Positions 1-49,748 of a stretch of DNA of 64,000 bases are shown one piece after another. Below the pieces are notes generated by a model that searched no databases, was not told the DNA's origin, and was given only the letters and a program-made list of their open reading frames with translations. The DNA is taken from the IMG/VR virus record IMGVR_UViG_3300042302_000394, positions 1-64,000 of that record. The stretch is one strand, 5' to 3'. Within the stretch, counting starts at the first letter, position 1; each line of letters starts with the position of its first letter. Both the position numbers and the translations under genes were made by a program.

Positions 1-530
1 GGTGCATTTGTTTTAGCGTCATACGGACCTAATTCATAATCAACTTGAATACGAACCTGCGGATCATCTAGCAACCAAATGCTTGATAACGAACTGTTAA
101 ATCCTAAGAATGTGCCGTTGCCAACTTTCTTACCAATAATACTCTTTAACCAAGCAGTGACTTCATCGCCCATATCCTGGTCAATCTGCGTGTCGATGTC
201 GCCAACTTTTGTTTTCTTTAGTTTGTTTAAGAAGTCCTGTGTATTGATTCCCTTAACATCAAAGAATTGTAAGCTGCTACCACTGAGCATCTTTCCCGAT
301 GCCAATAGTTTTGGATCCCAAATATATTTGCCGTAGGCTGCTTTAAATGATTCGTTTTGTGCAGACAATAATTCTCGCAGTTGAGCCACCATGTGATCAC
401 GGTCGTGAATCTTTAGATCAATTTCTTCTGCTTCTTGATCAGCAGCACCTTGCCAACCTGGACTTTGACTTGATACATTGCCGCCTTCGAGCAATGGTTT
501 TTTATTTCTGATTAGGTCGAACAACTGCAT
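1..530 (-). CDS. Partial gene (runs off window start): putative Pol-beta-fold nucleotidyltransferase-like virion protein
   Basis: Manual translation from ATG 530: MQLFDLIRNKKPLLEGGNV...MLSGSS...KVGDIDTQ...RIQVDYE; GS, DxD and third-Asp pattern; not in the ORF track because there is no stop in the window. Confidence 0.55.
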   Translation of the reverse strand, partial: MQLFDLIRNKKPLLEGGNVSSQSPGWQGAADQEAEEIDLKIHDRDHMVAQLRELLSAQNESFKAAYGKYIWDPKLLASGKMLSGSSLQFFDVKGINTQDFLNKLKKTKVGDIDTQIDQDMGDEVTAWLKSIIGKKVGNGTFLGFNSSLSSIWLLDDPQVRIQVDYELGPYDAKTNA

Positions 531-6027: not shown

Positions 6028-9000
6028 TTAAGTAACAAGAGTTGTTCCATACAGAGGCCACCAAGATGTAACGCCGTCACCAACAAGATAAATCAATTCT
6101 GCTGTTCCCTCAGGAGCAACATTTACCGCACCGTCGATGGCTCCATCTACAGTTAATGTACAATTACTGGAGATGTTGACAATAACTAATCGTTGTCCCG
6201 CCGTCCCGGGAGGCAATACAACAGTATGACCATCACTGCCACTATAACCACCAACCACTGTACAGAACAGTAAGTTGAATGTAACATTAGTAATCGTTAG
6301 CGTAGTATTAACACCATCAAACTCGTAGGTTTCTTGTCCTGTAACTACTGTCAATACTGAAGTACCAGAACTATTTTTAATGTCTCCACCATCAGGCAGT
6401 GTTAAACTACCATCCCCAGCAAAGGTCCACAACTGTGAAGTAGCACTGGTATCAACATTTGGTACTTTTATGTATATTTGATCATCTGCGGCCACTTTGA
6501 CATACTTGTCATCGTTGCCCAGGAATATGCTGGTCTGTGCCATATTCTCACTGATCAAATGTATGTGTCCGCTTTCACTGCCTTCGGTTGTGCCGTCTAC
6601 TATATTGACACGCAGGTAATTGGATCCAGCACCTGGAGCATAAGTTCCAGTAGTAACAATAGTGACAGTAAATGTTTCTTCGCCTTCAACAATAGCATCG
6701 TTAGCTATCATTAGCATGTTGGTATTAGTATAATTAAAACCGCCACCATCTAAAGTCCAATTAGCAGCCGCAAATGTTCCTGTTAGTACGGCAGGTGTGA
6801 AGTCTGCGGCTGTAATACCTGTGCCGGTAATTATGTATTCTACATCACCCTGAACATACTGAAGACCGCTAGCGTCCCACAATGTTATAGAAATAACAGT
6901 ACCTTCTGTGCCAGTGCTCACATAAGGGTCAGGATATGTCACTGGATCAAGTTCATGTAAGTATTGCTGATAACCTTGATCAGTGGGGTAGTCAGCAGTC
7001 ATATACGAATTATATGTCGAACGCAGAACTAGACTAGTTGCCTGTCCCGGACTGTTTGGAGTCAATACTAATGTGCTAGTCGTGTCTACAATGGTAGCAC
7101 CGTTTGGTAATGTTAACCCACCATCTGCGGCAAATGTCCAAGTATTAATTGCTGTTGATGTGCTAGCAGTTTCAATGTAGACATTAGGATCACTGTTGTT
7201 GCCCAGGATTGTGCTGGCTGTGCTTAATGTTAAGACACCATCTGTGCCAAATACCCAAGTGCTGGTTGTAGCAGTTGAATAAGTTTGAACAACAATATTA
7301 CCCCCATTCTTTTCAATCTTAACATACTGATCATCATCGCCTAGGAATAGATCAACTGTGGTAGGATTGCCTGATATCAAGTGTATGTGATTTGTTTCAG
7401 TAGTGCTGGTACTGCCAGTTGGACGAATAACCAAACTCTGTCCAGCACTGGCTCCAGGTGGGGATATAATCGTAGTAGTGTTTGTTTCACTTATGGTGCT
7501 ACCTTGGGGGAATTCTAATTCCCCATCTGTGCCAAATGTCCAGGTGCTGTTGGTAACAGTTGAGTAAGTTCCAACAACTATGTCACCACCGTGATCTATT
7601 TTAACAAACTGGTCATCGTTGCCTAGATATAGATCAGTCTCGCCACCAAAGCCTGCTGTCAAGTGTATGTGATTACCATCAACAACTGTGGGATAAATCA
7701 GCAATGCTTGAGTAGCACTAGATGCACCTGCGGGTTCAATTCTAAAAGCCCCCATACCCGATGATATAGTAGCACCGTCGTTTAATGTTAATGTACCATC
7801 CGATTCAAGTATAAATTCAGCGTCATTGTTAACTAATCTATCACCTAATGCTGTGGTACTGTCACCTGTGTACAGTGTGCCTATTAGAAAGGCACTGCTG
7901 TCGACGATTGGTGTAACAGTGGCAACGGTTATGTTTGACGTATTGTCAGTGTCAGTCTTATCTGCGTTGACCACTGTAATGTCGCTGGCCGATGTGTCTA
8001 ATGTACCAGTAAGATTTGAGGCTCTGAAATCCCATGCACCCACTGCGAACGGGTCGCCTGTGGCAGGTAACTGTGCTATTAGAGCATGGAAGTCACTTGG
8101 ACCTTCAAACGACCCAAAGCCACCGGCAAGTGCTACATAATCTTGTTTGACCGCTAGGTTACTTCCGCCGCCTTGACCAGCCAAGAAGTCGGAACCACTG
8201 ACTGAAAGCGTATCTATATTATCTAATAGTCGTTGCCATACTACTGTACCATCTAGATTATATTTGGCCACTACACAGGAAATGTCAATAGGATCGTCGG
8301 GCCCTGGATTGGGCACAGTTGTAGTGAACAGTGAACCAGACAGATAAAGTTTATCATCAGCACCAACCACTATGCTGGTGGCAATTGCTCCACAGTCGCC
8401 CTCTACACGACGGCTCCACTGTTTGACACCTGCACTGTTGAATTTAACTAAATTCATACAAATACCGGGTCCAGCATTGTCGACTTCGTATTGTCCGCAG
8501 ACATAGACGTTACCCTCACTGTCAATGTCAGCATCTGCTCCAGTACTGTCATATCCCTCGTCAAACAATATGGCCCTTTGCCAGTCAATGGTACCATCGC
8601 TGAGATACTTGACCACCAGCATGTGATTGTCTGTATCGCCTTCCCCACCCAGTTGATCCATATATCCAACGGCTACTACTTCGCCTGTGGGTCCAACTGC
8701 CATGCCGTAGGCTTCTTCGTCATCCTGTCCGTCTAGTTTTTTTGACCAAATGATTGAACCATCTTCAGCATCAACTTTAGTGGTTGTCACATAGCCACCG
8801 CCAAGGTTGTCAAAAGTGTAACCAACCATGACGGGATTTCCGTCCGATGCTACATCAACTACCTGGCTGTTACTGTTAATGCTCTCGCCAAACGCATAGG
8901 TCTTGCTCCATTCAACTGAGCCGCCGCCGCTGGCAATTTTAGTTAAAGTGGACTTTTCCTGTCCGCCATCGGTATTTGTTTTTCCCGCTACATAGATGAA

Positions 9001-12000
9001 TCCATTGGTTGGATCTACGGCCAGGCCCCATCCATCTGTTTCGTAGCCTGTACTAAATCGTGTGGTCCAAATTCGTGTGCCAGATGTGGTGTACTTGCCC
9101 ACTGAATAAAATGACCCGCCACTGTCTTCCCCGTGATAGAAAAGAGCAATCACGTTGCCAACACTGTCATATTCTACACTCAGTGCTATCAGTGGTGTAT
9201 CTAGTAGAGGAGTTGCTGACTCAAATGTCTGTACCCACACGTTGCTGGCAGCACTGCCGCCGCCCAATACACTAACTCCATTGCTGTCAAGGATATCACC
9301 ACCTGGTGGTAGTATGATATTGTTGTTGACAAATGTCCAAGTGTTGGTTACAGTAGAAGATCCACTGACACTGCCCAAGGCCAGTGTTTCACCAGTGAGT
9401 CCAACTATGTCAGTGACATAACTAACGCTGAGACTACTTGTTGACAATATTGCGGTTGATGTACCGGTTGACCACGTCAGGGTAGTCACAGTATATGTGC
9501 CAGTTGAAGAAATACTATCTATGTCACTGGTAAGATCAGCTATGGTTATATTGCCAAAGGTGCCAGTAACGCTGCCATCGATGGGCAGTTGTGCCACCAA
9601 TACTCTTGTCTCATTAGTGCCAGTACTGTCATCAATATCCGAACTGGTTACAGCAGTGACCGCTATCTTATCTTGATATATATCGCCTACTCTGTGGCCA
9701 GAACTGCCGCCGCCGTCAGCACCTTGATCTATTATAACTACACCCGCATCAGTTATCAGTATACGACTGTATAACATTTCTCCGTTGGCAGGATTGAGTT
9801 TTGTTATCCATAACTGTGGCTGTCCTACTGGCGGACCAGGTATGGTTCCAGTTACATATACATTGCCACTGGCGTCAAAACTTAAATCGTATGCTCCTGT
9901 ACTGTAGGAGCCGGGGCCGCCGTCTGTAATAGGGTCAAGTTCTCCCGTCGCTAGATATGAAGCCCATATCAAGTCACCATCTGTGTCGAATTTAGATACC
10001 ACGGCCTTTTGATCAGGGTCATCGTTGACTATGGTATAAACATAGCCACCGTTGTATATCACCGCAGCGGCTAGATCTCCTGTGGTAGTGACTAATTCTT
10101 TGGTCCATTGGTGTATGCCATTGATGTCCCACTTGGATAACATCGCACGTAAACCGCCGTCATAATAATCACCTATGGCCCAAACATCACCAGTGGCAGG
10201 GTTAACAGTCACAGCACGGTATTGTCCATCGACAGGAAGGTCTTCAAAATCCTCGGGTATGATATTGCCGGTCCAAATTGGTGTTCCGCTGTCTCCATCG
10301 ATTTTAATCACTACAGGAGTAGTACTGTACGAGATGTTGTCATAGTAAGAACCTGCTAGATAATAATTTCCAGAATTATCACAGGCTATATCCACAGCAG
10401 AAACATACCCATCCACGAAACCTAGACTTCCTTGGGCTATTCCGCCCAGTCCAAGATTTCCATCAGTGTCCATATAGCCGGACCAGCAACCGAAGCCGCT
10501 GACAACAGCAGTGGCCAACCAGTAGATTCGATCATTGCTGTCTATGGCAAAGGCCTGATTGACCGCACCGCAATTGGCACCACTGTTGTCATGCCATGTT
10601 CTACTCCATAATAAATTACCATTGGTATCGTATTTTAACAGTAGACTATCTACATCATTTAGGCCGCCGTCACCAAATAGTACACCACCTAGCACATATA
10701 CATTGCCCACGCTGTCATAGAAAGCACCGGTGCCTATGGTATAACTAGAAGTAGTGACCGCAGTGGTTATGCCGCCAAATTCTGCTGCCCAGTATGGACG
10801 AATTACTCCACTACTGGGTACTTGTATTGTCACGCTGTTGTTGCTGACAGATAACTTGGTATTATCGCCACCATCTATGACAATGGCATCGCTGTCAACA
10901 TTGGCAGTACTGATAACGGTACCATCAATGGCCAATCCGTCTAGGTATGTTTCTGGACTTGGGATCTGTGTTGGACTTGCGTCTAACCATACACCGCCGG
11001 TGGCAACATAGGTACGTCCTTCAACAGTGTCAAACCATTGCGAACCAGGCGTAGTCGCTGCTGGAGCAGTATCTGAAATTATCACTGCACCGAGTACAAT
11101 GTTGGTATCTCCCTGGACAGTTAAGTTGCCGGTGGTGTTTACTGTGATGAGAGGGTTGCCGTCAACTGTGACATAGTTGTCTTGGTTAACTCCCAGTGCC
11201 ACTCCGCCGATATAGATCGTGCCTGTTCCAACATAGATACTACGCCATTGACTTGATGTAGATCCTAGATCGTACTCTAGATCAGCGTCGGGAAGGATAT
11301 GGCCAGGCGCAGTCAGTGCACCATCTTTACCAAAACTCCAAAGATTTGTCACATCTGTACCAATCTGTACACCCACGTTGGTCAAAGTTGAATCATAGGG
11401 TAACTTGACGTAGTTAAGGTCATCACCGAAGAATAGATCTACAGTGGTAGGGTCATCACGCATGATGTGGAAATGTGATGCGACGGTTGGCACACACTCC
11501 GGAGTGTTACCAAACAATACTGTGCCACGATCGGTGGTTAGTTTAATACCATCTAAAGTACCGCTACCAATAGTTCCGTACGGTAATACGATATCTCCAG
11601 GGGCAGTTAATGTGCCATTACCACCAAATGTCCAATTGCTACCAACATCATCGCCGGCACTGATTTGTATGTCTGCAATAGATTTAATTAATGCGTTAGT
11701 CGTTGTGTATAACGCATTACTAGAGGTGGTTAATGTTATTGTACCATCAGTACCTAATATTACACTGTAACTGCCTGTAGTTAATCTATCTTCTTGTGCT
11801 CGCTCACCTTGTGGACCAGTTGGTCCTGGATCTCCTTGTGGACCTGTTGGACCTACAGAACCTGGATCACCTGTTGCACCTGCTGGTCCTGGATCACCGA
11901 TGTCACCTTGTGGACCAACAATTTGTCCAACATCGTTCCACGCTGTATTCGTTCCCCAGAACCATACACGACCTGTATCAACAGCAATATAACCTTCACC

Positions 12001-12648
12001 GAAGTTAGCACTCAGTGGAAGAGACAATGAATTAGTTACTGTACCTAATAGAACAATACTGACACCTTGATCTCCAGTTAGACCTCTAGGACCGGGATCG
12101 CCCTGTGGACCAGTTGGACCAACAGCACCCGGATCTCCACTTGCGCCTGCTGGGCCAGCAGGCCCACTAATACCTGTATTACCTTGTGGACCAGTTGGTC
12201 CTACAGCCCCGTTTTCACCCGCAACGCCTTGGGGCCCTTGAACGCCTTGTGGACCTGTGGGGCCTGTTACTCCTGCATTTCCTTGAGCACCCGAAGGTCC
12301 AGATGGTCCAACATCGCCTTGAATGCCCTGAGGGCCTGTTGCTCCTGCATTTCCTTGAGCACCCGAAGGTCCAGTTGGCCCCACTGCACCTGCATTTCCT
12401 TGTGGACCAGTTGCACCCGAAGGTCCTTGTGGACCAGTACTACCGTTTACACCTGAAGGGCCAGTTAGTCCTACATTTCCTTGTGGACCAGTTGCACCCG
12501 AAGGCCCAGTTGGTCCAGAAACGCCGCCACCTATTCCGCCTGCATAAATTTCGTCGAAGTTAGCATTTACTTTGACAAATGCAGAACGAATGCTTTCACC
12601 ATCACCTGCTAGTTCTCCCGAACCTATACTAATTGTCTGTTTTGTCAT
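6028..12648 (-). CDS. 2206-aa fibre/baseplate protein: gp9/gp10-like N-terminus, collagen repeats, two beta-propeller regions, repeated WTFGxDG modules
   Basis: [30 protein letters not shown]; G-X-Y runs; repeated D-x-x-GNxY and KYxxxGxxxW blades. Confidence 0.75.
11806..12516 (-). repeat. Collagen-like (Gly-X-Y)n coding repeats ([12 protein letters not shown]), interrupted once
   Basis: Triplet periodicity visible in DNA and protein. Confidence 0.9.
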
Positions 12649-13126: not shown

Positions 13127-13816
13127 TTATACGGAAAAAGCAGTCTCTCTAAGGATAAACTCTTCAACTTTTTTGATGTATCCGCTCAAATATATGCCTA
13201 CCATGCTGAGCATTTTGTCGTCTTCTACGTACATAAAGGGATCTTGTGCGTAGTGTCTAGTGCTTACAAGCCATCGTCTACTGGTTTCGCTAATGTCTAG
13301 CTTGTCTCCGTACTTATCTGCCCAGGTTACAAATGTAGCTCGCTTGTCTGCAGGGAATCTTGATTTAAAATATACCCTGTATTTGTACTTTTCTTTGGGA
13401 AATACGTCTCGCAGTATCTTTTTATGACCATTACTAAGCATGAATTCTAGTTCTTGGTCCGTAGTCGGCCCGCTTATCTTTCTAATCCACTTGTTTAGAT
13501 CTTTATCTATTGTTTCTAATATAGATTTGTCTGTGCAAAATAGATTAAAATGCGACCCTTCTACTCGAATTTTTACATCGGGGTTGTCAATGAACGGTGC
13601 TACTAAGTTAGTAAACTCTAAGTAATCTGCTTTGTTGATTTGCAAAGCAGACAGCCTATCAACGTGCATACCTTTACCAGTAGCACACCACTCTCGAACA
13701 ATATCGACTCCGCTGTGAACAATTCTAGAGGCTCCTACTTGTCTACATTCGACTTTGTAGGGCCACTTGTTATAGAACAGTTTACTGGAGTTCAGTTTCT
13801 GTATCTGTGTTTTCAT
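13127..13816 (-). CDS. Hypothetical protein (likely start MKTQIQK at 13816)
   Basis: ORF overlapping the clpA 3' end. Confidence 0.6.
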   Translation of the reverse strand: MKTQIQKLNSSKLFYNKWPYKVECRQVGASRIVHSGVDIVREWCATGKGMHVDRLSALQINKADYLEFTNLVAPFIDNPDVKIRVEGSHFNLFCTDKSILETIDKDLNKWIRKISGPTTDQELEFMLSNGHKKILRDVFPKEKYKYRVYFKSRFPADKRATFVTWADKYGDKLDISETSRRWLVSTRHYAQDPFMYVEDDKMLSMVGIYLSGYIKKVEEFILRETAFSV

Positions 13817-16073
13817 CTGGAATCTTTGATTTAATGACTGGCATAACATCAACAATGTTAAGTTTTAGTTGTTCGTCTACTACATTAACTTCAACTACTC
13901 CGCCGTTTGTTAATTTACCAAAAAGAATTTCACGACTCATAGGTTTCTTAATGAATTCGTCAATAGTTCTTTGCAAAGGACGAGCACCCATTTTACTATT
14001 AAATCCTTTGGCAATTAAAAATTCAACTGCTTCGGCATTGGGTTTAACATGAATATTTTTGTCTTTAACTAATGCATTGAGCTCGTCAATAAATTTCTTA
14101 ACAACTTTGATCATTGTAACATGGTCTAACTTACCAAACTTAACAATACCATCTAAACGATTGCGGAATTCAGGCGCAAAGAATTTGTTAACAGCATCTT
14201 TAGGATCACTATCACGCTCTAGACTACCAAAGCCTACTGAATTCTTTTCAGCATCTGCGGAACCTAAGTTTGATGTCATAATGATAATAGCATTGCGACC
14301 ATCTGCCTTTTTGCCGTTACTACCGGTAATAAAACCATTGTCCATTAATTGTAGCATAACAGTTAGTACATCCGGGTGAGCCTTTTCGACTTCGTCTAAT
14401 AAAAGAACACAGTTAGGTGTTTCTTGTAAGCATGTAATCAACTGTCCTGCATTTTCATCAAATCCTACGTATCCAGGCGGCGCTCCAATAAATTTAGCAA
14501 CACTATGTTTTTCCTGAAATTCACTCATATCAAATCGTACAAGTTTAATTCCCATACCAGTGGCGAGCTGTTTAGCAGCTTCAGTCTTTCCTACGCCAGT
14601 AGGACCTACAAACAAGAAACTACCGACCGGCTTATTAAATGGTTTTAATCCTGCTTGGGCAATAAAAATCTTATCTAACAGGCTAGTGATAGCATTTTCT
14701 TGACCGAAAACCTTGTTACGTAGGCCTTTTTCCAGACTTGCAAGATTAACACCTTCTTTTGAGCTAACCTGTTCAATTGGAAGATTAGCCAGTCTTGCAA
14801 CTTCAAAAACAATCTCGTCATGATCAACAACTCCGTTTTCTTCGTCCTTAACTTTAAATCGAGCACATGCACAATCAATTAAGTCTAGCGCCTTATCTGG
14901 AAGCTTCTTGTCAGTCATGTACTTAACAGAGTAGGTTACTGCATCAGTAATGGCTTGATTGGTAATCTTAACACCGTGGTGTTTTTCGTAATACTTCTTA
15001 ACACCTTTTAGGATCTTAATAGTAACTGCTTCACTAGGCTCGTCAATAGTAACACGCTGGAATCGACGCATTAGGGCGCGATCTTTTTCAAAGTGCTTGC
15101 GATATTCTTCCCAGGTAGTACTGGCGATAACTTTTAGTGTACCTTTTGTCAGCATAGGCTTGAGCATATTTGCCATGTCGTTACTGTTACCATTTGCAGC
15201 GCCTGCCCCGTTCATCATATGTGCTTCATCGATAAACAGAATACAATTTTTCTTCTTTTCTAACGCACTGATAATAGCTTTAAGACGTTCTTCAAAATCA
15301 CCACGATACTTACTACCGGCAAGCATAGAACTAATGTCCATACTATAAACAGTGTGATCTTGAATAAATGTAGGAACAGTACCTTCAATGATTTTTTTAG
15401 CCAAGCCTTCTGCAATAGCAGTTTTACCTACACCGGGATCACCGATTAAAATAACGTTACTTTTGTTTCTTCGAGCAAGTACTAGTTGAACTTCTTCGAT
15501 TTCTTTTTCACGACCGATAACTGGATCAATTTTCTTTGATTTTGCTTTTGCAGTTAGATTGGTGCAGAACTGACTAATCATCCTTTCAAGTTGGAGATTA
15601 GATCGTGTGCTACCTGCAGAACTCTCCTCATTGTCTTCTTTGCTATATTCTTTTTGGATAAAATTTAGGAATTTATCTTTATCGATATTTGCTTTTTTAA
15701 TAAAGTGCGTGGCATAGCTTTTCTTTTCAGCAAACATGCTGATAAAACAATCAACTGGTTCAATAACATTTCTACCAGTAAACAACACCTGAGTAAACGC
15801 TCGATTTAAAACGCGATCAACTGTATTTGTTTTTTTAGGACGATCGACGCTTGGGTTAACAATTTCCTTTAAATCTTCTGATATATATTTTTCTAAGTCT
15901 GTAATTAAACTTTTAACGTCAGCACCAAAGCTACCGAGGAGTTTTGCAAATTCTTCGTTAGTAACTAGCCCGTGCAAGAAGTGTTCAAGAGTAACATACT
16001 CGTGTTCGTGTTCGTTGGCTAGACTCACGGCTGATTCGAAAATCTGCTCAAGATCTTTATTTGGTTGTAGCAT
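13782..16073 (-). CDS. clpA: ATP-dependent Clp protease ATPase subunit ClpA
   Basis: Clp-N domain (HEYVTLEH), two AAA+ modules (GDPGVGKT, GPTGVGKT), GSKYRG and GYVG pore loops, VGF ClpP-docking loop, no ClpB M-domain. Confidence 0.93.
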   Translation of the reverse strand: MLQPNKDLEQIFESAVSLANEHEHEYVTLEHFLHGLVTNEEFAKLLGSFGADVKSLITDLEKYISEDLKEIVNPSVDRPKKTNTVDRVLNRAFTQVLFTGRNVIEPVDCFISMFAEKKSYATHFIKKANIDKDKFLNFIQKEYSKEDNEESSAGSTRSNLQLERMISQFCTNLTAKAKSKKIDPVIGREKEIEEVQLVLARRNKSNVILIGDPGVGKTAIAEGLAKKIIEGTVPTFIQDHTVYSMDISSMLAGSKYRGDFEERLKAIISALEKKKNCILFIDEAHMMNGAGAANGNSNDMANMLKPMLTKGTLKVIASTTWEEYRKHFEKDRALMRRFQRVTIDEPSEAVTIKILKGVKKYYEKHHGVKITNQAITDAVTYSVKYMTDKKLPDKALDLIDCACARFKVKDEENGVVDHDEIVFEVARLANLPIEQVSSKEGVNLASLEKGLRNKVFGQENAITSLLDKIFIAQAGLKPFNKPVGSFLFVGPTGVGKTEAAKQLATGMGIKLVRFDMSEFQEKHSVAKFIGAPPGYVGFDENAGQLITCLQETPNCVLLLDEVEKAHPDVLTVMLQLMDNGFITGSNGKKADGRNAIIIMTSNLGSADAEKNSVGFGSLERDSDPKDAVNKFFAPEFRNRLDGIVKFGKLDHVTMIKVVKKFIDELNALVKDKNIHVKPNAEAVEFLIAKGFNSKMGARPLQRTIDEFIKKPMSREILFGKLTNGGVVEVNVVDEQLKLNIVDVMPVIKSKIPDENTDTETELQ

Positions 16074-27433: not shown

Positions 27434-30400
27434 TCACTTGAGTTTATTTTTAAGTTCTTTAACTTCTTTAGATAATTCTTTAACAGCTTCAATTAAAAGT
27501 GGCACTAGTTTTTCATACTTGACAGCTAGATATCCGTTGGTTCTTGTAGCAACAATTTCTGGTAAAATTGCTTCAATTTCTTGAGCAATAACACCTATGT
27601 CGTGTTTTCTTACAAAGAAATCATCTTCTCCACCACGACTTTCAATATATGAATCTGTCCAGTCAAAGCGTACACCCCTAATTTGTTCAAGCATTTCGAG
27701 AGGGTTGCTTAATGATTGTACATTTTCTTTTAGTCTAGCATCAGATGAGTAGTAAGCAGTGATTTCGTTTTCTGCCCTGATTTCACCAACTGCCCCGCTG
27801 TACCAACCACTTCCTACTGACAGTGTAGTAACAGTAATTGTACTTTGATATGCTGGTGCCGCCGCACCTCGACTTACTGCAATTTGACCTATAGAGCCCG
27901 GACCGTAGAAAGCAGTTGTATCAGGAGCTGATTGATAAGGAACTTGACCAGCAGTACCACCTGCTAAGTTTGTAGAATTACCTACAGTAACTGTGCTAGG
28001 TGCTTGCCATGTAGCAGTGCTCGAACCCGCAGTTAACACATATCCGTTAACACCTATTGGAATAAATGCTGTTCTTCCAGGACCGCTTTGGATAGGAATG
28101 CTGCCAGCGGTACCACCTGCTAGGTTAGTTGCAGTTGTAGAATTACCTACAGTAACTGTGCTAGGTGCTTGCCATGTAGCAGTCGTTGCTCCGGCTGTTA
28201 ATACATGTCCAGCTGTTCCTAGAGTAATAAATGCAGTACGTCCCGGTGCGCTTTGAATAGGCATTGCACCTTGTGAACCACCTGCTAGATGAGTAGCAGT
28301 GGTTGCATTGCCCGCTGTTAAATCAGTTACCTGACTCCATTGTGGTGCTGTACCTCCTGAATTAACAGTTAGTATATAACCTGCAGAGCCGATGCCTAAG
28401 AAAGTTGTAGTACCTGCACCAGTTTGGTATACAATAGAACCTGCTAATCCACCACCAACATTGTCAGTGATTGCAGATCTTCCTACATATAAAGATGAAG
28501 TTGATATAAAGGACGGACCTGTTGCACTAGCACCGTTGCTTACTAAAACTTGTCCTGCTATACCCGGGCCTACAAAACTAGTAACACCTGATGTAGTTTG
28601 GAATGGTAACTGTCCAGTAGTACCGTTTTTCAAGTTTGTAGCAGTAGTTGCTTCGCCCGCTGCAACTCCTGCTAGTGTTTCCCAGCGAGGACCACTAGCA
28701 CCAGCGACCAGTACATAACCTAATGCGCCCAGTGATAAAAATACTGTACTGTTGGCAGCATTTTGATAAGGAAGTGATCCAGCACTACCACCTACTAGGT
28801 CGTCTGCTAAAGTTGATCGTCCAACATATATACTACTTGTGTTAGTAAACACCGGACCAGTTGATGTGGTTCCTGCACTCACTAGCAGTTGTCCTGCTGT
28901 TCCTGGGCCAAAGAAACTAGTCAATCCAGGGCTAGTTTGGAATGGAACTTGTCCTGTAGTACCGTTCTTCAAGTTAGTTGCAGTGGTTGCTTCACCTGTA
29001 GCAATACCACTTAGTGATGCCCATTGAGGTGCAGTTGCACCTGCGGTTAACACATAACCGTTAGTGCCTAGAGGTAAAAATACTGTGCTGTTAGCACCAT
29101 CTTGATAGACTAAACCACCTGCACCACCACCGACGATGTCATCTGCTAGTACCGCTCTACCTACGTAGATGTTTGATGTGGAAACAAATTTAGGACCAGT
29201 TGCACTTGCACCGTCACTGGTTAATATTTCACCCGCTGTACCTGGACCAAAGAAACTAGTGTTATGAGGTGCTGTCTGGAATGGAACTTGTCCCGTAGTA
29301 CCGTTCCTTAAATTAGTAGACGAATTAGCACTTGATATAGATCCAGAAACAGTTGCGTATAATGTTCCGCCTACATACAAATCTCCACCAATACCTGCAC
29401 CACCTCCGACAATCAATGCACCGGTATTAGTTGATGTTGCATTTGTAGCATTGTTAGTTTGTATAATATCATCTGTGACTATTAACGTTGTTGTAACAGT
29501 TGTTAATTGAATTGTTAATTTTTGAGCAACAATTTCACCACCAACATACAAATCGCCACCGATACCGACACCCCCTACAACTCTTAGAGCACCGGTTTGC
29601 GTAGAAGTTGCAATAGTTGTGTTGGTTATAGTTGACGCAGGTGTAGTTAGTATACCGTTGTTTGTATTAAACACGAGGTTACCACTTGCACCTAATGTTG
29701 CATAAGCACTAGCACCGGCAACCATTGTCAAGTATCTTAACGGAGTTGCTTCGCTGGTGCCCAAGCTGGTAACGTATGTTTTTTCACTTTCAGCAGATTT
29801 ACCTACAGATATTGTAGTTGTTGAAACAAAACTTGCAGTATTTGTCTGAGCTTGTAGTAAACTTCCTGCTGCACCGGCTGATATAAATGTAGTAACACTG
29901 GTTGCAGATTGAATAGGGATCTCGCCTGCTGCACCGTTGTTTATGTTATTTGTGTCTGTAGGGCCAGATGGACCAGATGGACCAGATGGCCCAGTAACAC
30001 CTTGCGGTCCTTGCGGACCGGGAGGTCCTGAAGGTCCTTGAACGCCTTGCGGTCCTTGTGGACCTGTAGCACCCCTAGGTCCTTGAACGCCTTGCGGTCC
30101 TTGTGGACCTTGCGGACCAGTAACGCCCTGTGGTCCTTGAACTCCTTGTGGTCCCTGCGGGCCTTGAACGCCTTGTGGTCCTTGGGGTCCCTGAACTCCC
30201 TGTGGTCCTTGTGGACCTGTAACACCTTGTGGTCCCTGTGGACCAGTGGCACCTATTTGATTTCCTAACCAAGTTCTAACTCTTGCTGGTTCGAGTTGTT
30301 GCTCAACACCGTCGTGCGCTACAATGAATACCGTTTGGTAATCAGTAGGATTCGTTAAGTTAGTCGATAAGACTTCAGAAAGAGATGCTCTAATAGACAT
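27434..30400 (-). CDS. Long tail fibre with collagen segment, ~55-aa NLxxGxxGxxPxQ repeats and C-terminal intramolecular chaperone (peptidase S74)
   Basis: [10 protein letters not shown]...[13 protein letters not shown]...[15 protein letters not shown]. Confidence 0.85.
29960..30254 (-). repeat. Collagen-like GPQ/GVQ/GPS repeats
   Basis: Near-tandem 9- and 27-nt repeats. Confidence 0.9.
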
Positions 30401-30483: not shown

Positions 30484-32031
30484 TTAAACCCAGGATTGAA
30501 TGTTGGAACCTGTAGTTCCTACTCTAATCCATGTATCAGTTGCTACACAAACGTAAAGAAAATTTGTGTCATAAGATACAAGCCCAGAAAAACCTGACGA
30601 GTTAGGAAGTTTTGATCCTGTTCCAACTGCTACAGTGCCTGGTGGTCCCGACGGACCTGATGCTCCAGTGGGTCCAGTAGCTCCACTAGGACCTTGTGGT
30701 CCTGTAGCGCCAGATGGTCCACTAGGTCCTGTAGCGCCTACTCCTGATGGTCCACTAGGACCTGATGGTCCTGTTGGTCCAGTTGGTCCAACAAAGCCAA
30801 TTCCGTTGGCGCCCGATGGGCCTGACGGTCCTGTCGGTCCTGTACTACCTGCGGGACCCTGCGGTCCTGTGGCACCTGCGCCCGATGGCCCAGTCGGACC
30901 TGATGGTCCTGCAACAGCACTTGCTGGACCCGGAGGTCCCGACGGTCCTGTTGCACCTTCTGGTCCTGTTGGACCCGACGGTCCTTGTGGCCCTGTAGCA
31001 CCTGCACCTGTGGGTCCTACGTCACCTGGAATTCCTTGAGCACCTGACGGTCCTTGTGGGCCTTGTGGTCCCGTAGTACCACCGCCGGTGCCGCCTGATA
31101 TTGTAACCCATTCGGTGTCATACTCAGTGTTTGATGCTTTGGCTAGAACTTGTCCAGTAAATCCACCTACTGCTATGCCTGTGCCTGTGCTTCCAGGTGC
31201 GCCTGATGGTCCTGATGGTCCTGATGGGCCTGGCAAACCGGGGCTTCCCGGACTACCTGCAGGGCCTTGTGGTCCAGTAGGCCCTGCACCAGCAGTTGTA
31301 CTAGTGTTGACCCATTTAGTACCGTCGTACTTTAAAAACTCTCCGCTAATAGGACTTGTTAGTGTTACATCAGTTAACGAGCTTAATGCAGTTACTCCCG
31401 GTGTTGCAGAACCTAAATTTACAACTCCGAATGTACCATACATGTCACTACTGTTTTCTGCGGCATAATATAGTGTAGATGGAGCGCCTAACGGTACAGC
31501 AAATGTAATTGTTCCCGTGGCTGTGCCATTATTAGTTACACCACTATTATATGTATTTTCAGTTCCTGTAGTAGCCGCAGTTTTAATCCATAACGGATAC
31601 CCAGCAGCATTAACACTGAAGTTATATGTAAATCCTCTTACAAGGTTTAATGTAGGATCATTGAATCCTTCGATAATATAGTCTAAACTACCGTTGTTAG
31701 TAATAGTATATGTAATTCCAAACCCGCCACCTTCTGGTCCAGTTGGACCAGCGTCACCTTGCGGCCCTTGAGGACCAGAAGGCCCAGTTGGACCAGGTAC
31801 TGTACTAGCATCGCCCTGCGGACCTTGTGGTCCTGTTGCACCTTCTGGTCCTTGTGGTCCAGCGCCACCAGCTACTCCGCCATAGGCAAGAGTAGCCCAG
31901 GTCGAAGTGCCGCTGCCTATTTTAAATTGCCCTGTATCTGTTTCTAGGGCCATTTCTCCTTCGGCCAGGACAGGGTTTGCAGAACTCCATTCTGCAGCGG
32001 TACCTCTTCTAAGTTGAATTTGAACAGCCAT
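30484..32031 (-). CDS. Collagen-repeat fibre protein with Mtd-N-like N-terminus
   Basis: [11 protein letters not shown]...NPVLAEGE; three G-X-Y blocks; C-terminal [15 protein letters not shown]. Confidence 0.8.
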
Positions 32032-35869: not shown

Positions 35870-36805
35870 TTACACGATTGTACGGAAATAGTCAATGGTT
35901 CTAACAAGTCCTTGTTCCAAATTGATTTTAGGTTCCCAATCGAGCATAGACTTTGCTACTGAAATATCCGGACGACGTTGCTTTGGATCGTCTTGAGGCA
36001 AAGGCATTTGAAGGATTTGGCTCTTGCTTCCGGTAAGTTCAATAACTTTATGTGCTAATTCCCACATGGTAAACTCTCCTGGATTGCCAGTATTGACAGG
36101 CCCGATAAAATTATCGTCGGTGTGGTTCATCATTGCCTGCATAGCATCCAAAAGATCATCAACATAGCAGAAACTACGAGTTTGCATACCATCACCGTAG
36201 ATAGTAATGTCTTTGCCTTGTAGTGCTTGAACGATGAAATTACTAACTACTCTGCCATCATTTTGAGCCATTCTTGGGCCATAAGTGTTGAAAATACGAA
36301 CAATTTTGGCCTTAACATCGTGAGTACGGTAGTAGTCCATAAACAGTGTTTCTGCGGCACGTTTACCCTCATCGTAGCAACTACGGATACCAATTGGATT
36401 TACATTGCCCCAATATGATTCCGGTTGTGGATGTACAGTTGGGTCACCGTAGCATTCACTGGTACTTGCCTGTAGAATCTTAGCACCAGTACGTTTGGCC
36501 AAACCTAGCATATTGTAGGCACCTAGCACACTGGTTTTCATTGTTTGGATAGGATCCCATTGATAATAATATGGACTTGCAGGGCAAGCCAAATTATAAA
36601 TCTCATCAACTTCTACATATAATGGAAAGCAAACATCTTGTCGGATGACTTCAAAATTCTTGTTATCTAATAAATGAGCAATATTGTTTTTGCTACCTGT
36701 AAAATAATTGTCCACACAAAGAACATGGTGTCCTTCGTTGACAAGCCGATCACATAAATGTGAACCTAAAAATCCTGCGCCGCCTGTTACTAATACTTTT
36801 TTCAT
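35870..36805 (-). CDS. UDP-glucuronate decarboxylase (UDP-xylose synthase)-like SDR
   Basis: [45 protein letters not shown]. Confidence 0.92.
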
Positions 36806-37284
36806 TTGTTTCCTTTAATTAAATTAGGTGAGTACTGTGGCAATACATTACTAACTTCTGTTTCTTTTTTATTTTCTAGTTTAACGGTTCTATCTCTAAG
36901 TTCGCTAGAACTATAAACATGTTCTCTTTTATGATAGTGTAATTCTATACCGTTGTCAATACACCATTGCTTGCCTGTAAAATCTCTATTTAGATATTCG
37001 TCACTGAGAAACCGAATATGAATAGTCTGTGTCTTAAGTAATTGTAACAGATCGAATTCGGTTTCGTATATTAAAATTTCATCCACATATTTGCAGGCCT
37101 GTAATTGCACATATCTTTCATAGGCACTTTGAACAGGTTTATTTTTAACTCCAGGTCTATCTATTGAAGGATCAATTTGAAGTGCAACAACAAGATAATC
37201 GCATAACTGTTTCTCCATTTTAAGCATGGTTACATGACCTGCATGTAACAGATCAAAACTACTACAGTTAAATCCTATCTTCAT
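36802..37284 (-). CDS. Second TagD-like cytidylyltransferase
   Basis: [16 protein letters not shown]. Confidence 0.88.
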
Positions 37285-37415
37285 TCTGCGTCCTTTGGCG
37301 CTACAATTCCATATTGTTCATACATCCATTTAATAAATCTTTCAATTTCTTTACTTGGGTATGGATACGCTTTGTATGCTATGGTTACTCTTTCTAACCA
37401 ATCTTTATCTGTCAT
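37281..37415 (-). CDS. Small hypothetical protein (44 aa)
   Basis: Manual translation MTDKDWLERV...; ATGA coupling to the downstream gene. Confidence 0.45.
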   Translation of the reverse strand: MTDKDWLERVTIAYKAYPYPSKEIERFIKWMYEQYGIVAPKDAE

Positions 37416-37416
37416 G

Positions 37417-37590
37417 TTAGTTCCAGTGCCTTAATACACCTGCTACTATAAAGCAGTTTGTTATTATGTATGATAGCACAATAAATGTGCGAAAGCAAGC
37501 AATTAGATCTGATTCCGAATCTGTATTGCCTGCTTTTTCTCCAAGGGCCTTAGCCCATAGTCTCCAAATGTTACGCAAATAGGTCTTCAT
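37417..37590 (-). CDS. Small membrane protein (start MKTYLRNIW at 37590)
   Basis: WRLWAKALGEK...TNCFIVAGVLRHW. Confidence 0.55.
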   Translation of the reverse strand: MKTYLRNIWRLWAKALGEKAGNTDSESDLIACFRTFIVLSYIITNCFIVAGVLRHWN

Positions 37591-38077
37591 TCCATTCACG
37601 ATGTCCTTCACGGAACGCCATATTGGCCTGTGTTTCGCGTACTTCCACACGATAGCACCAAAGTCTTGCCGCTTCGCCCGGTCCCCACATCTCTGGAATG
37701 TAAACGCCGTTGACATATTTGTAGAGCATGTCACTTAATGCTTCACAACCGAGTGCTGGTAGAATGACAATCTTAGCCATGTTCTTTTCTTGTAGCATTT
37801 TGAATACTTCCATTTGAGGATCGTCTTGTGCAACAATTAAAGTATGATCGAATTGATCCTCTAATGTTTTCTTTAGTTCTTTTAAACCACCATAGTCAGC
37901 CGCCCAATTGCGGACATCTAGGTCGTTGGTGCCAAAGTAGAATTTCATGCTAAATGAATAGCCGTGAATTAGATTACAATGACTATCACTGCGCCATTGG
38001 CGGTATGCACAGGGAAATGCATCGTGATATTCTTTTGTGCTTGTGTACTTGTATAGTACGGGTTGTAGATTTGCCAT
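37571..38077 (-). CDS. queD: QueD/6-pyruvoyl-tetrahydropterin synthase-like T-fold protein (divergent Zn site)
   Basis: HCNLIHGY, DYGGLK, FDHT, CE, VRET motifs. Confidence 0.8.
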   Translation of the reverse strand: MANLQPVLYKYTSTKEYHDAFPCAYRQWRSDSHCNLIHGYSFSMKFYFGTNDLDVRNWAADYGGLKELKKTLEDQFDHTLIVAQDDPQMEVFKMLQEKNMAKIVILPALGCEALSDMLYKYVNGVYIPEMWGPGEAARLWCYRVEVRETQANMAFREGHREWNEDLFA

Positions 38078-38160
38078 CTCTAGTCTCCTTTGTAAGGTAG
38101 CAAGTTTGACGACATGCAGAGTTTATAAAGCGGGATGAATGTGCGTGAAAGTCCGCTGCC
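38078..38160 (-). ncRNA. Candidate riboswitch (preQ1-I-like H-type pseudoknot plus SD-sequestering hairpin) in queD leader
   Basis: P1 AGCGG/CCGCU; P2 ACG(C)ACAU/AUGUCGU; CAUC before the P1 3' strand; UAUAAACU tail; CU(A)CCUU-ACA-AAGGAG hairpin. Confidence 0.55.
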
Positions 38161-38177
38161 TACTATTTATTATAGGC

Positions 38178-38762
38178 TTATCGACGTGAAACAATTTTGT
38201 CGCAAAGACCATAAGCCAGTGCTTCATCTGCGCTCATAAATGTATCTCGATCCATATCACGCTCAAAATCGGCATAGCTTTTACCGGCGGTATTGTGTTC
38301 AACATACAATTTGGTTAACATGGTTTTCATTTGTGTGATTTCTTTGTATTGAATTTCAATATCACTCTGCATACCACGAGCACCACCACTAGGCTGATGA
38401 ATCATGTGACGAGCATGTGGCAACATAAAACGTTTACCTGGATGTCCTGCCTGTGCTAGGAAACTACCCATTGAACAAGCCTGACCCATAACATAGGTAC
38501 ACACATTTGGTTTGACAAACTGCATAACGTCATAGATAGCCATGCCACTTGTAATTACACCGCCTGGACTATTAATGTAAAAGTGAATATCCTTTTCGCT
38601 GTCTGAACTTTCCAAATGTAGGATCTGTGCTACAATTAGATTACTACTGTGATCATCGACTGGTCCATTCAAGAACACAATACGCTCATTAAGCAAGCGG
38701 CTAAAAATATCAAAGGCTCTTTCGCCTTGTCCGGTCTTCTCGACCACCATTGGTACTAACAT
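38178..38762 (-). CDS. clpP: ClpP protease subunit
   Basis: [24 protein letters not shown] (Ser), MIHQP (His), RD (Asp). Confidence 0.96.
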
Positions 38763-49049: not shown

Positions 49050-49748
49050 TTATCTAGGTGCGAACTCTTGTTGTAATTTGATGTTATCAAAAAATTCTTT
49101 CTTTGTAGCTGGATCATCTCTAAATGATCCTTTGAGCACAGTTGTTTGAGTTAATGAACTATGCGCCATGATGCCACGATTCTCACAGCACCCGTGTACT
49201 GCTTGAATGTAGACTGCTACGTTTTCTGAGGCAGTAGCTTTACTAATTTCTCGGGCAATGTCGTTGCAAAGTTCCTCCTGGAGAGTCCCGCGACGAGCAC
49301 ACCACTGAGCAATACGAGTGTACTTGCTAAGACCAATAAGTTTTTCTGCGGCGATGATGCCAATGTAAGCGACACCGCTAACGGGCTGATGATGATGACT
49401 GCACATAGAGCGCAACTCACTACGTACCACCAGCATACCTTCGTATCGGTCTTCTGAATCGTTTGGAAATGCTGTTGCGTCTGGTGCTGCTTCATATCTT
49501 CCTGCCATTATTTCATTGTAGTACATCTTGGCCAGTCTACGTGCTGTGCCTTTGCTGTTGGGGTCGGTTTCACGATCGATCAACAGTGAATCTAACACTT
49601 TTTCAAAGGCCTCTGTTGCTTCGTCAATAAGTTCAGGCATAACATTGTTGTCGACATAGTCGCTGATGTTGTCGCCTGCCCAGAAGCGTTTGTTATCTTG
49701 TTTCATTCGATCGCGGATAACTTGCGATAGATTTTTACTTGTATCCAT
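49050..49748 (-). CDS. folE: GTP cyclohydrolase I
   Basis: TARRLAKMY, SMCSHH, GLSK..RI, LQE, HGC...RG. Confidence 0.95.
   Translation of the reverse strand: MDTSKNLSQVIRDRMKQDNKRFWAGDNISDYVDNNVMPELIDEATEAFEKVLDSLLIDRETDPNSKGTARRLAKMYYNEIMAGRYEAAPDATAFPNDSEDRYEGMLVVRSELRSMCSHHHQPVSGVAYIGIIAAEKLIGLSKYTRIAQWCARRGTLQEELCNDIAREISKATASENVAVYIQAVHGCCENRGIMAHSSLTQTTVLKGSFRDDPATKKEFFDNIKLQQEFAPR

Follow-up and report, generated by a model that had tools for sequence, protein, structure and literature searches.

Does the long untranslated leader of a phage gene for 7-deazaguanine synthesis carry a riboswitch, and if so, is it one of the known preQ1 sensors? The question arose from the queD leader in a 64,000-nucleotide stretch of viral DNA (positions 1 to 64,000 of IMG/VR record IMGVR_UViG_3300042302_000394, hereafter the window), for which an earlier note, made from the sequence alone, had proposed a preQ1-I-like pseudoknot with an expression platform giving feedback control of a phage 7-deazaguanine pathway. 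In short, we found that the pseudoknot is real and that it recurs with compensatory base changes in hundreds of uncultured freshwater phages, whereas the reading of it as a variant preQ1-I-type feedback switch is only partly supported. The element looks like an undescribed riboswitch class, predicted to turn translation of the gene on.

The queD leader and its recurrence in phage genomes

To verify the observation, we first examined the locus itself. All genes around the element lie on the minus strand. The clpP gene (38178–38762; Pfam CLP_protease, 3e-76; stop codon at 38178–38180) is followed by a gap of 100 nt (38078–38177), after which comes the gene for a divergent QueD/PTPS-family protein of 168 aa (37571–38077, ATG at 38075–38077). 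Its product scores 55.3 bits against Pfam PTPS (cut-off 22.4) but only 34 bits against NCBIfam QueD, which is below the cut-off of that model, and it is 52% identical to the QueD-like protein of Acidovorax phage ACP17. The earlier note had called the gap unusually long and had placed in it a late-promoter-like TAAATA, a pseudoknot and a Shine-Dalgarno (SD) hairpin, and each coordinate that it gave proved correct. The median spacing of 98 greedily called ORFs in the window is 5 nt, and only 6 of 97 gaps reach 100 nt. The single sequence is, however, not thermodynamically special (MFE −16.5 kcal/mol, z = −0.10), and the evidence that this is more than chance is therefore comparative.

The window is a fragment of a T4-type myovirus with rIIA, rIIB, baseplate and fibre genes, and it has no close cultured relative. 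The pathway partner folE (GTP cyclohydrolase I) lies 11 kb upstream of queD on the same strand (49050–49748), while neither queC nor queE is present in the 64 kb. Sugar-nucleotide and LPS-type genes follow queD on the same strand: in the window (35870–37284) a heptose-1-phosphate adenylyltransferase-like cytidylyltransferase and an NAD-dependent epimerase/dehydratase, and in one related locus (L150:5081–5917) a KDO-8-phosphate synthase behind the same leader. The 286 nt after queD (37285–37570) hold only small ORFs, namely one of 44 aa at 37281–37415 and a GTG ORF at 37417–37734 that overlaps the queD 3' end. Since relatives have an ORF of 48–63 aa overlapping the queD stop (related loci L017, 3504–3695, and L071, 3492–3638), a small conserved gene may be co-translated with queD. 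Elsewhere the phage carries a proteostasis set, which includes ClpP and a 763-aa Clp/AAA ATPase (13782–16073; phrog_4871, 'ATP-dependent protease'), with matches to the DnaJ, peptide deformylase, PhoH, Bax1-I and Band 7 families among other ORFs. It also encodes very large fibre proteins with collagen-repeat matches, one of 2206 aa (6028–12648, 27434–30400 and 30484–32031). Two ORFs among those scanned match the Mtd_N (major tropism determinant N-terminal) family, which raises the question of a diversity-generating retroelement target.

Conservation and covariation in homologous leaders had been named beforehand as a test of the idea, and we collected relatives. A protein-guided search of IMG/VR returned 594 relatives of the QueD-like protein, of which 80 loci were kept. 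In all 75 of these loci that have upstream DNA, the same motif of about 55 nt sits directly before the gene. The gene upstream of the motif differs between loci: clpP lies within 3 kb upstream of queD in only 4 of 80 loci, and only the window's own contig shares the window's direct arrangement, indicating that clpP is not part of the element. A DNA-pattern search that ignored genes returned at least 120 further loci. Of 168 motif copies, 163 directly precede a queD-like ORF, and in the three exceptions with substantial downstream ORFs that we examined, queD is the second gene, behind genes for a cupin, a methyltransferase-like protein and an unknown protein, respectively. The motif also precedes a second QueD family, only 34% identical in protein, in 79 of 80 loci, and a third, canonical-like QueD family in 10 of 80 loci. 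A covariance model built from 49 leaders hits the window once (55.5 bits, E 2e-15) and nowhere else in the 64 kb.

In L071 (2554–3495; identical with L299) two PTPS/QueD paralogues stand in tandem behind one motif copy, the first a canonical-like QueD of 141 aa (NCBIfam QueD, 80 bits) and the second the divergent type found in the window, here of 171 aa, so the divergent type may not be a simple QueD equivalent. In locus L267 (1797–1822), and likewise in L269, L272 and L273, a second, partial copy of the motif, comprising the P1 5' strand through the P1 3' strand only (20 bits), lies about 600 nt upstream of the full copy and could be a remnant of recombination at the leader.

Outside uncultured phages the motif was hardly seen. 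Megablast of the 2.5-kb region and blastn of the 91-nt leader against cultured phages gave nothing or only chance hits, with no copy among 50,697 cultured-phage records, and the queD loci of ACP17 and of a Rhizobium phage lack the motif. A pattern scan of 185,579 GTDB species genomes, in which P1 was restricted to AGNGG/CCNCU, gave 16 hits. Twelve of these are chance matches that lack the motif and are not next to a queD-like gene. The other four (L204, L211, L212 and L215) are contigs of 4–8 kb carrying the phage-type leader and queD, filed in MAGs of Bacteroidota (three) and Nitrospira (one). They are probably phage contigs binned into bacterial MAGs, and the three Bacteroidota bins may hint at the host. 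No bacterial chromosomal copy was thus seen with this restricted pattern. Literature searches for a queD, 7-deazaguanine or phage riboswitch motif, which did not cover subscription journals, found no paper describing the element.

Structure and covariation of the pseudoknot

The element (38109–38157, minus strand) forms an H-type pseudoknot with exactly the P1 and P2 helices that the earlier note had drawn, and both are kept by compensatory changes in about 170 distinct leaders from IMG/VR phage contigs. P1 is made by AGCGG (38153–38157) and CCGCU (38129–38133), and it appears elsewhere as AGAGG/CCUCU, AGUGG/CCACU, UGCGG/CCGCA, ACCGG/CCGGU, AUCGG/CCGAU and AGUCG/CGACU. On two model-derived alignments P1 is 99.3% and 99.6% paired, with 3 and 4 of its 5 pairs, respectively, changed on both sides. 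The main part of P2 (P2a) is made by ACG(C)ACAU (38139–38146, with C38143 bulged) and AUGUCGU (38109–38115). A free-register comparison of own-partner against cross-partner helix scores did not discriminate (11.2 against 10.4) because of GC-rich repeats, and we replaced it with anchored register scans and shuffles. A two-dimensional register scan shows a clear maximum at this register, with 79% of cells paired against 20–50% elsewhere, and P2 exceeds partner shuffles (0.78 against 0.525 ± 0.023, maximum 0.61 in 2000 shuffles). For P1 plus P2 together, 86.5% of cells are paired in the first dataset and 90.4% in the second, where 8 of 10 pairs are changed on both sides. None of 500 shuffles reaches this, and slid controls stay at 51% or below, although the related sequences are phylogenetically close, so that shuffle statistics overstate independence.

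P2 is longer than originally drawn. Beyond an invariant U (U38138) opposite a near-invariant C (C38116), a U·C mismatch inside P2, we found two further pairs (P2b) between CA (38136–38137) and UG (38117–38118). CA goes with UG in 166 leaders and CG with CG in 4, with no mixed case. A pair count on the alignment gave 51 A-U and 4 G-C, and further G-C cases occur in other lineages, including the third QueD family. The partner of U38138 is C in 169 of 170 leaders, the one exception having A, which gives a U-A pair. The U itself was required by the extraction pattern, but it is also seen in two alignments (A3 and A4).

The loops are likewise conserved. L1 (ACUUUC, 38147–38152) begins with the pattern NCU in 170 of 170 leaders. 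The extraction pattern required this CU, but the C and U are also invariant in a MAFFT alignment (A2). L1 is 4–9 nt long, and L1 plus P2a is 8–14 nt. We considered base triples between the L1 CU and P2b, but this idea was dropped because L1 does not change when P2b switches from A-U to G-C. L2 (UC, 38134–38135) is only 2–4 nt long and consists of one to three U, A or C followed by a C that directly precedes the P1 3' strand and is invariant in A2, A3 and A4. This position is analogous to the specificity C of preQ1-I (PMC10622847). L3 (UUAUAAACUC, 38119–38128) is A-rich and 10 nt long in 169 of 170 leaders, with invariant A at positions 3, 5 and 7. Its U at position 9 and C at position 10 were fixed by the extraction pattern but are also invariant in A2. 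The order from 5' to 3' is thus P1 of 5 bp, L1, P2a of a variable 4–7 bp, U, CA, L2, the P1 3' strand, L3, UG, C and the P2a 3' strand.

The predicted expression platform and transcription context

Next we examined how the pseudoknot might be linked to translation. No terminator was found in the leader. Downstream of P2 the leaders fall into four platform types (A to D), and in all of them the 3' strand of P2a, plus the next few bases, is complementary to the ribosome-binding region. In the type represented by the window, UGUCGUC (38108–38114), which includes six of the seven bases of the P2a 3' strand, pairs with GAUGGCA (38072–38078), which contains the start codon. In another type GYCAUUG pairs with CAAUGGC, in the commonest type (CU.)CCUAUG pairs with CAUAGG(AG), and in a fourth type UGUCUU pairs with GGAGACA. 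We call this helix P3. P2a 3' bases pair with the RBS region in the MFE of all type A, C and D leaders and of 69% of type B leaders. P3 also covaries between platform types, as the bases before the start codon follow the anti-RBS strand: C(A/G)UC goes with GAUG in 59 of 61 leaders and CAUUG with CAAUG in 24 of 24, whereas these bases are free to vary in the SD-pairing types. Within type B, RNAalifold gave a conserved but non-covarying hairpin, and in some type A leaders the overlap between P2 and P3 is only 3 nt.

For the window, the nested MFE of the leader is P1 plus P3. P3 alone is worth −10.9 kcal/mol, against −2.8 for P2 and −5.6 for P1, and P2 and P3 cannot coexist. The RNA should therefore default to a closed ribosome site and open it only when the pseudoknot is stabilised. 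A crude accessibility model agrees with this: when the aptamer bases are withheld, unpairing of the SD rises from 0.35–0.37 to 0.56–0.71, and that of the AUG in type A from 0.04 to 0.38. The hairpin said by the earlier note to bury the SD (AAGGAG, 38085–38090) does exist, with CCUU (38094–38097) pairing with AAGG (38087–38090), but only as the tip of P3, and this tip varies among type A relatives. The alternative pairing of the 5' G(U)AGGCAG with UUGCUAC, which had also been proposed, is specific to the window's upstream sequence; the sequence 5' of P1 differs in almost every locus, and this pairing was rejected.

The TAAATA of the window (38164–38169, within AATAAATA, 7 of 8 matches to TATAAATA) is a T4-late-promoter-like element located 6 nt upstream of P1, its function being inferred from sequence alone. 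In relatives, TAAATA ends 3–16 nt upstream of P1 in 68 of 166 leaders, and a sigma70-like site (TTGnnn-16..18-TAnnnT) is found there in 45 of 166. In those leaders, about two thirds of the total, the element would begin within a few bases of the 5' end of a dedicated transcript. Most type B leaders (68 of 78) also contain a near-consensus sigma70 promoter inside the element, as exemplified by L017 (2954–2982), in which TTTACA (the P1 3' end plus L3), a 17-nt spacer and TGCTATAAT (the P3 loop) give 11 of 12 matches plus an extended −10. Since leaders of this type mostly have a late-type TAAATA upstream of P1, early transcripts may start inside P3 and escape control, while late transcripts carry the aptamer. 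Part of the L3 and P3-loop conservation in type B could thus act at the DNA level.

With regard to the pathway, folE lies upstream in 69 of 200 related loci and a radical-SAM queE-like gene downstream in 62, on the same strand, whereas queC is present in the flanks fetched of only one. One annotated example reads folE, ferredoxin, unknown, motif, queD, small ORF, MazG, unknown, QueE-like. The pathway in these phages thus probably stops at CDG or a derivative, matching the CDG-only branch of phages that make dDG, dCDG or dADG (PMC10516641).

Interpretation and relation to known regulatory RNAs

The explanation that we favour, with moderate confidence, is that the queD leader is the aptamer and expression platform of an undescribed, so far phage-only, riboswitch-like RNA. 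In this view, the transcript would start from a promoter a few bases upstream, almost directly with the pseudoknot. In the absence of an effector P3 would win and queD would not be translated, whereas locking of the pseudoknot, most likely by a small ligand with a guanine-like face read by the invariant C of L2, would free the ribosome site and allow QueD to be made. Candidate ligands, among which the present data do not discriminate, are a 7-deazaguanine such as preQ0, preQ1 or CDG, guanine, or a pterin such as CPH4 or the QueD substrate H2NTP. Our analysis demonstrates the structure, its conservation and covariation, its association with the gene and the mutually exclusive pairings, so that a covarying structured element in the 5' UTR of a metabolic gene and a platform linking it to the RBS are both in place; that a ligand is bound, which one it is, and that the switch works in the ON direction are inferences. 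The riboswitch interpretation as such is plausible and much strengthened. The ON logic contradicts the simple end-product feedback suggested by the earlier note, although it should be underlined that an ON switch on a biosynthetic gene is less common than end-product repression.

Among the alternatives, a structured 5' UTR that works without a small ligand seems rather unlikely but remains the most serious rival. The element could be an operator for a phage or host protein, such as a translational repressor or QueD itself, a 5'-terminal stabiliser, or a kinetic or thermal switch between P2 and P3. It would sit at the very 5' end of the transcript, T4-type phages use leader pseudoknots and translational repressors (the gene 32 leader and RegA being examples), conserved loops could equally be protein contacts, and the competition between P2 and P3 would work as a co-transcriptional timer without any ligand. 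On the other hand, the strict association with one metabolic enzyme function across three unrelated-looking QueD families and many genomic contexts is typical of metabolite sensing, the pocket-like features (the invariant C at the helix junction, the U·C mismatch and the A-rich L3) resemble small riboswitches, and no conserved co-occurring RNA-binding protein gene was noticed next to the element. It is very unlikely that the conservation merely reflects overlapping promoters, a recombination hotspot or recent common descent, with the RNA fold being incidental. The internal promoter of type B leaders and the near identity of many leaders speak for this, but compensatory changes keep the pairing while slid registers lose it, P2b and P3 covary, L3 is equally conserved in type A leaders, which lack the internal −10, and the RNA is more conserved than the protein it precedes.

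We also consider it unlikely that the element is a diverged member, a fourth subtype, of the preQ1-I class that binds preQ1 or preQ0 through the conserved C and represses queD by feedback. Scans against Rfam 15 of the region, of two short leaders (window 38060–38185, 126 nt, and related locus L020, 2900–3010, 111 nt) and of the whole window returned no relevant family. The PreQ1 (RF00522), preQ1-II (RF01054) and preQ1-III (RF02680) models gave no hit, on the two short stretches even at E ≤ 10, whereas a canonical preQ1-I copy in a Staphylococcus record scored 35.8 bits (E 3e-6) in the same kind of scan. The que operon of phage Dp-1 also has no Rfam hit. However, the experimentally validated type III preQ1-I riboswitch of the E. 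coli K-12 yhhQ leader (L379:5100–5230), which thus failed as a positive control, is likewise missed at E ≤ 10, so the absence of an RF00522 hit is weak evidence against distant relatives. Conversely, our covariance model gave a weak hit on the canonical preQ1-I copy (11.5 bits), aligning P1 and the start of L3.

A more far-reaching possibility, which we regard as tentative, is a phage-specific class with a new fold variant that activates queD translation in response to something other than preQ1, for example H2NTP, CDG or 7-deazaguanine, or guanine released by DNA transglycosylation. It would then be the first known RNA sensor dedicated to phage 7-deazaguanine DNA modification. Riboswitch classes with hundreds of representatives and clean covariation are now rarely found, and very few are carried by phages. 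The present element would add a small pseudoknot aptamer related in layout to the smallest known riboswitch but with opposite logic, give the first regulatory handle on phage 7-deazaguanine synthesis, whose products are used in anti-restriction DNA modification, and offer a compact ON switch of about 90 nt for synthetic biology. It would also show how one aptamer is combined with at least four different RBS-sequestering platforms and three enzyme families, and the identity of its ligand would indicate which intermediate the phage monitors during infection.

Compared with known systems, the regulated gene and its neighbours (folE, ferredoxin and a radical-SAM QueE-like gene) match the CDG branch of the phage 7-deazaguanine DNA-modification gene sets (FolE-QueD-QueE with or without QueC, plus DpdA) in phages that lack QueC, and the work describing it does not mention riboswitches (PMC10516641). 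The leader pseudoknot of T4 gene 32 is also an H-type pseudoknot at the 5' end of a T4-type phage mRNA that governs translation, but it is bound by its own gene product, while here the gene is a metabolic enzyme and the loops are invariant across three protein families. SAM-II/SAM-V, guanidine-III and NAD+-II riboswitches share a compact pseudoknot of about 50 nt in which one strand competes with or contains RBS elements, with loop-helix triples, but no sequence or model match to them was found and the gene context is different. The preQ1-II and preQ1-III riboswitches are also pseudoknotted sensors upstream of que genes, but they are larger HLout-type folds with extra hairpins.

The closest resemblance is to preQ1-I (types I–III), and the similarities seen by the earlier note are real. 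The element shares with it an H-type pseudoknot in the leader of a queuosine/7-deazaguanine gene, a 5-bp P1 (often AGAGG/CCUCU as in Bacillus), an invariant C immediately 5' of the P1 3' strand, in the position of the specificity base (97% conserved in type III; PMC10622847), an A-rich L3 starting (A/U)UA.AAA and, as predicted here, translational control. In contrast, the aptamer measures 48–56 nt from the P1 5' strand to the P2 3' strand, against about 34 nt or fewer, L1 starts with NCU and lacks the short U-first loop of 2–3 nt, P2 comprises 7–10 positions with an internal U·C mismatch rather than 2–4 bp, and L3 ends in an invariant UC followed by UG.C. Moreover, P2 lies 25–40 nt upstream of the SD, and its 3' strand is complementary to the SD or start codon instead of containing part of the SD, as in preQ1-I, where ligand binding sequesters the SD; this arrangement predicts ON rather than OFF logic. 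We therefore treat the element, seen only in phage contigs, as a separate class that may work like preQ1-I at the binding pocket, and not as a member of that class.
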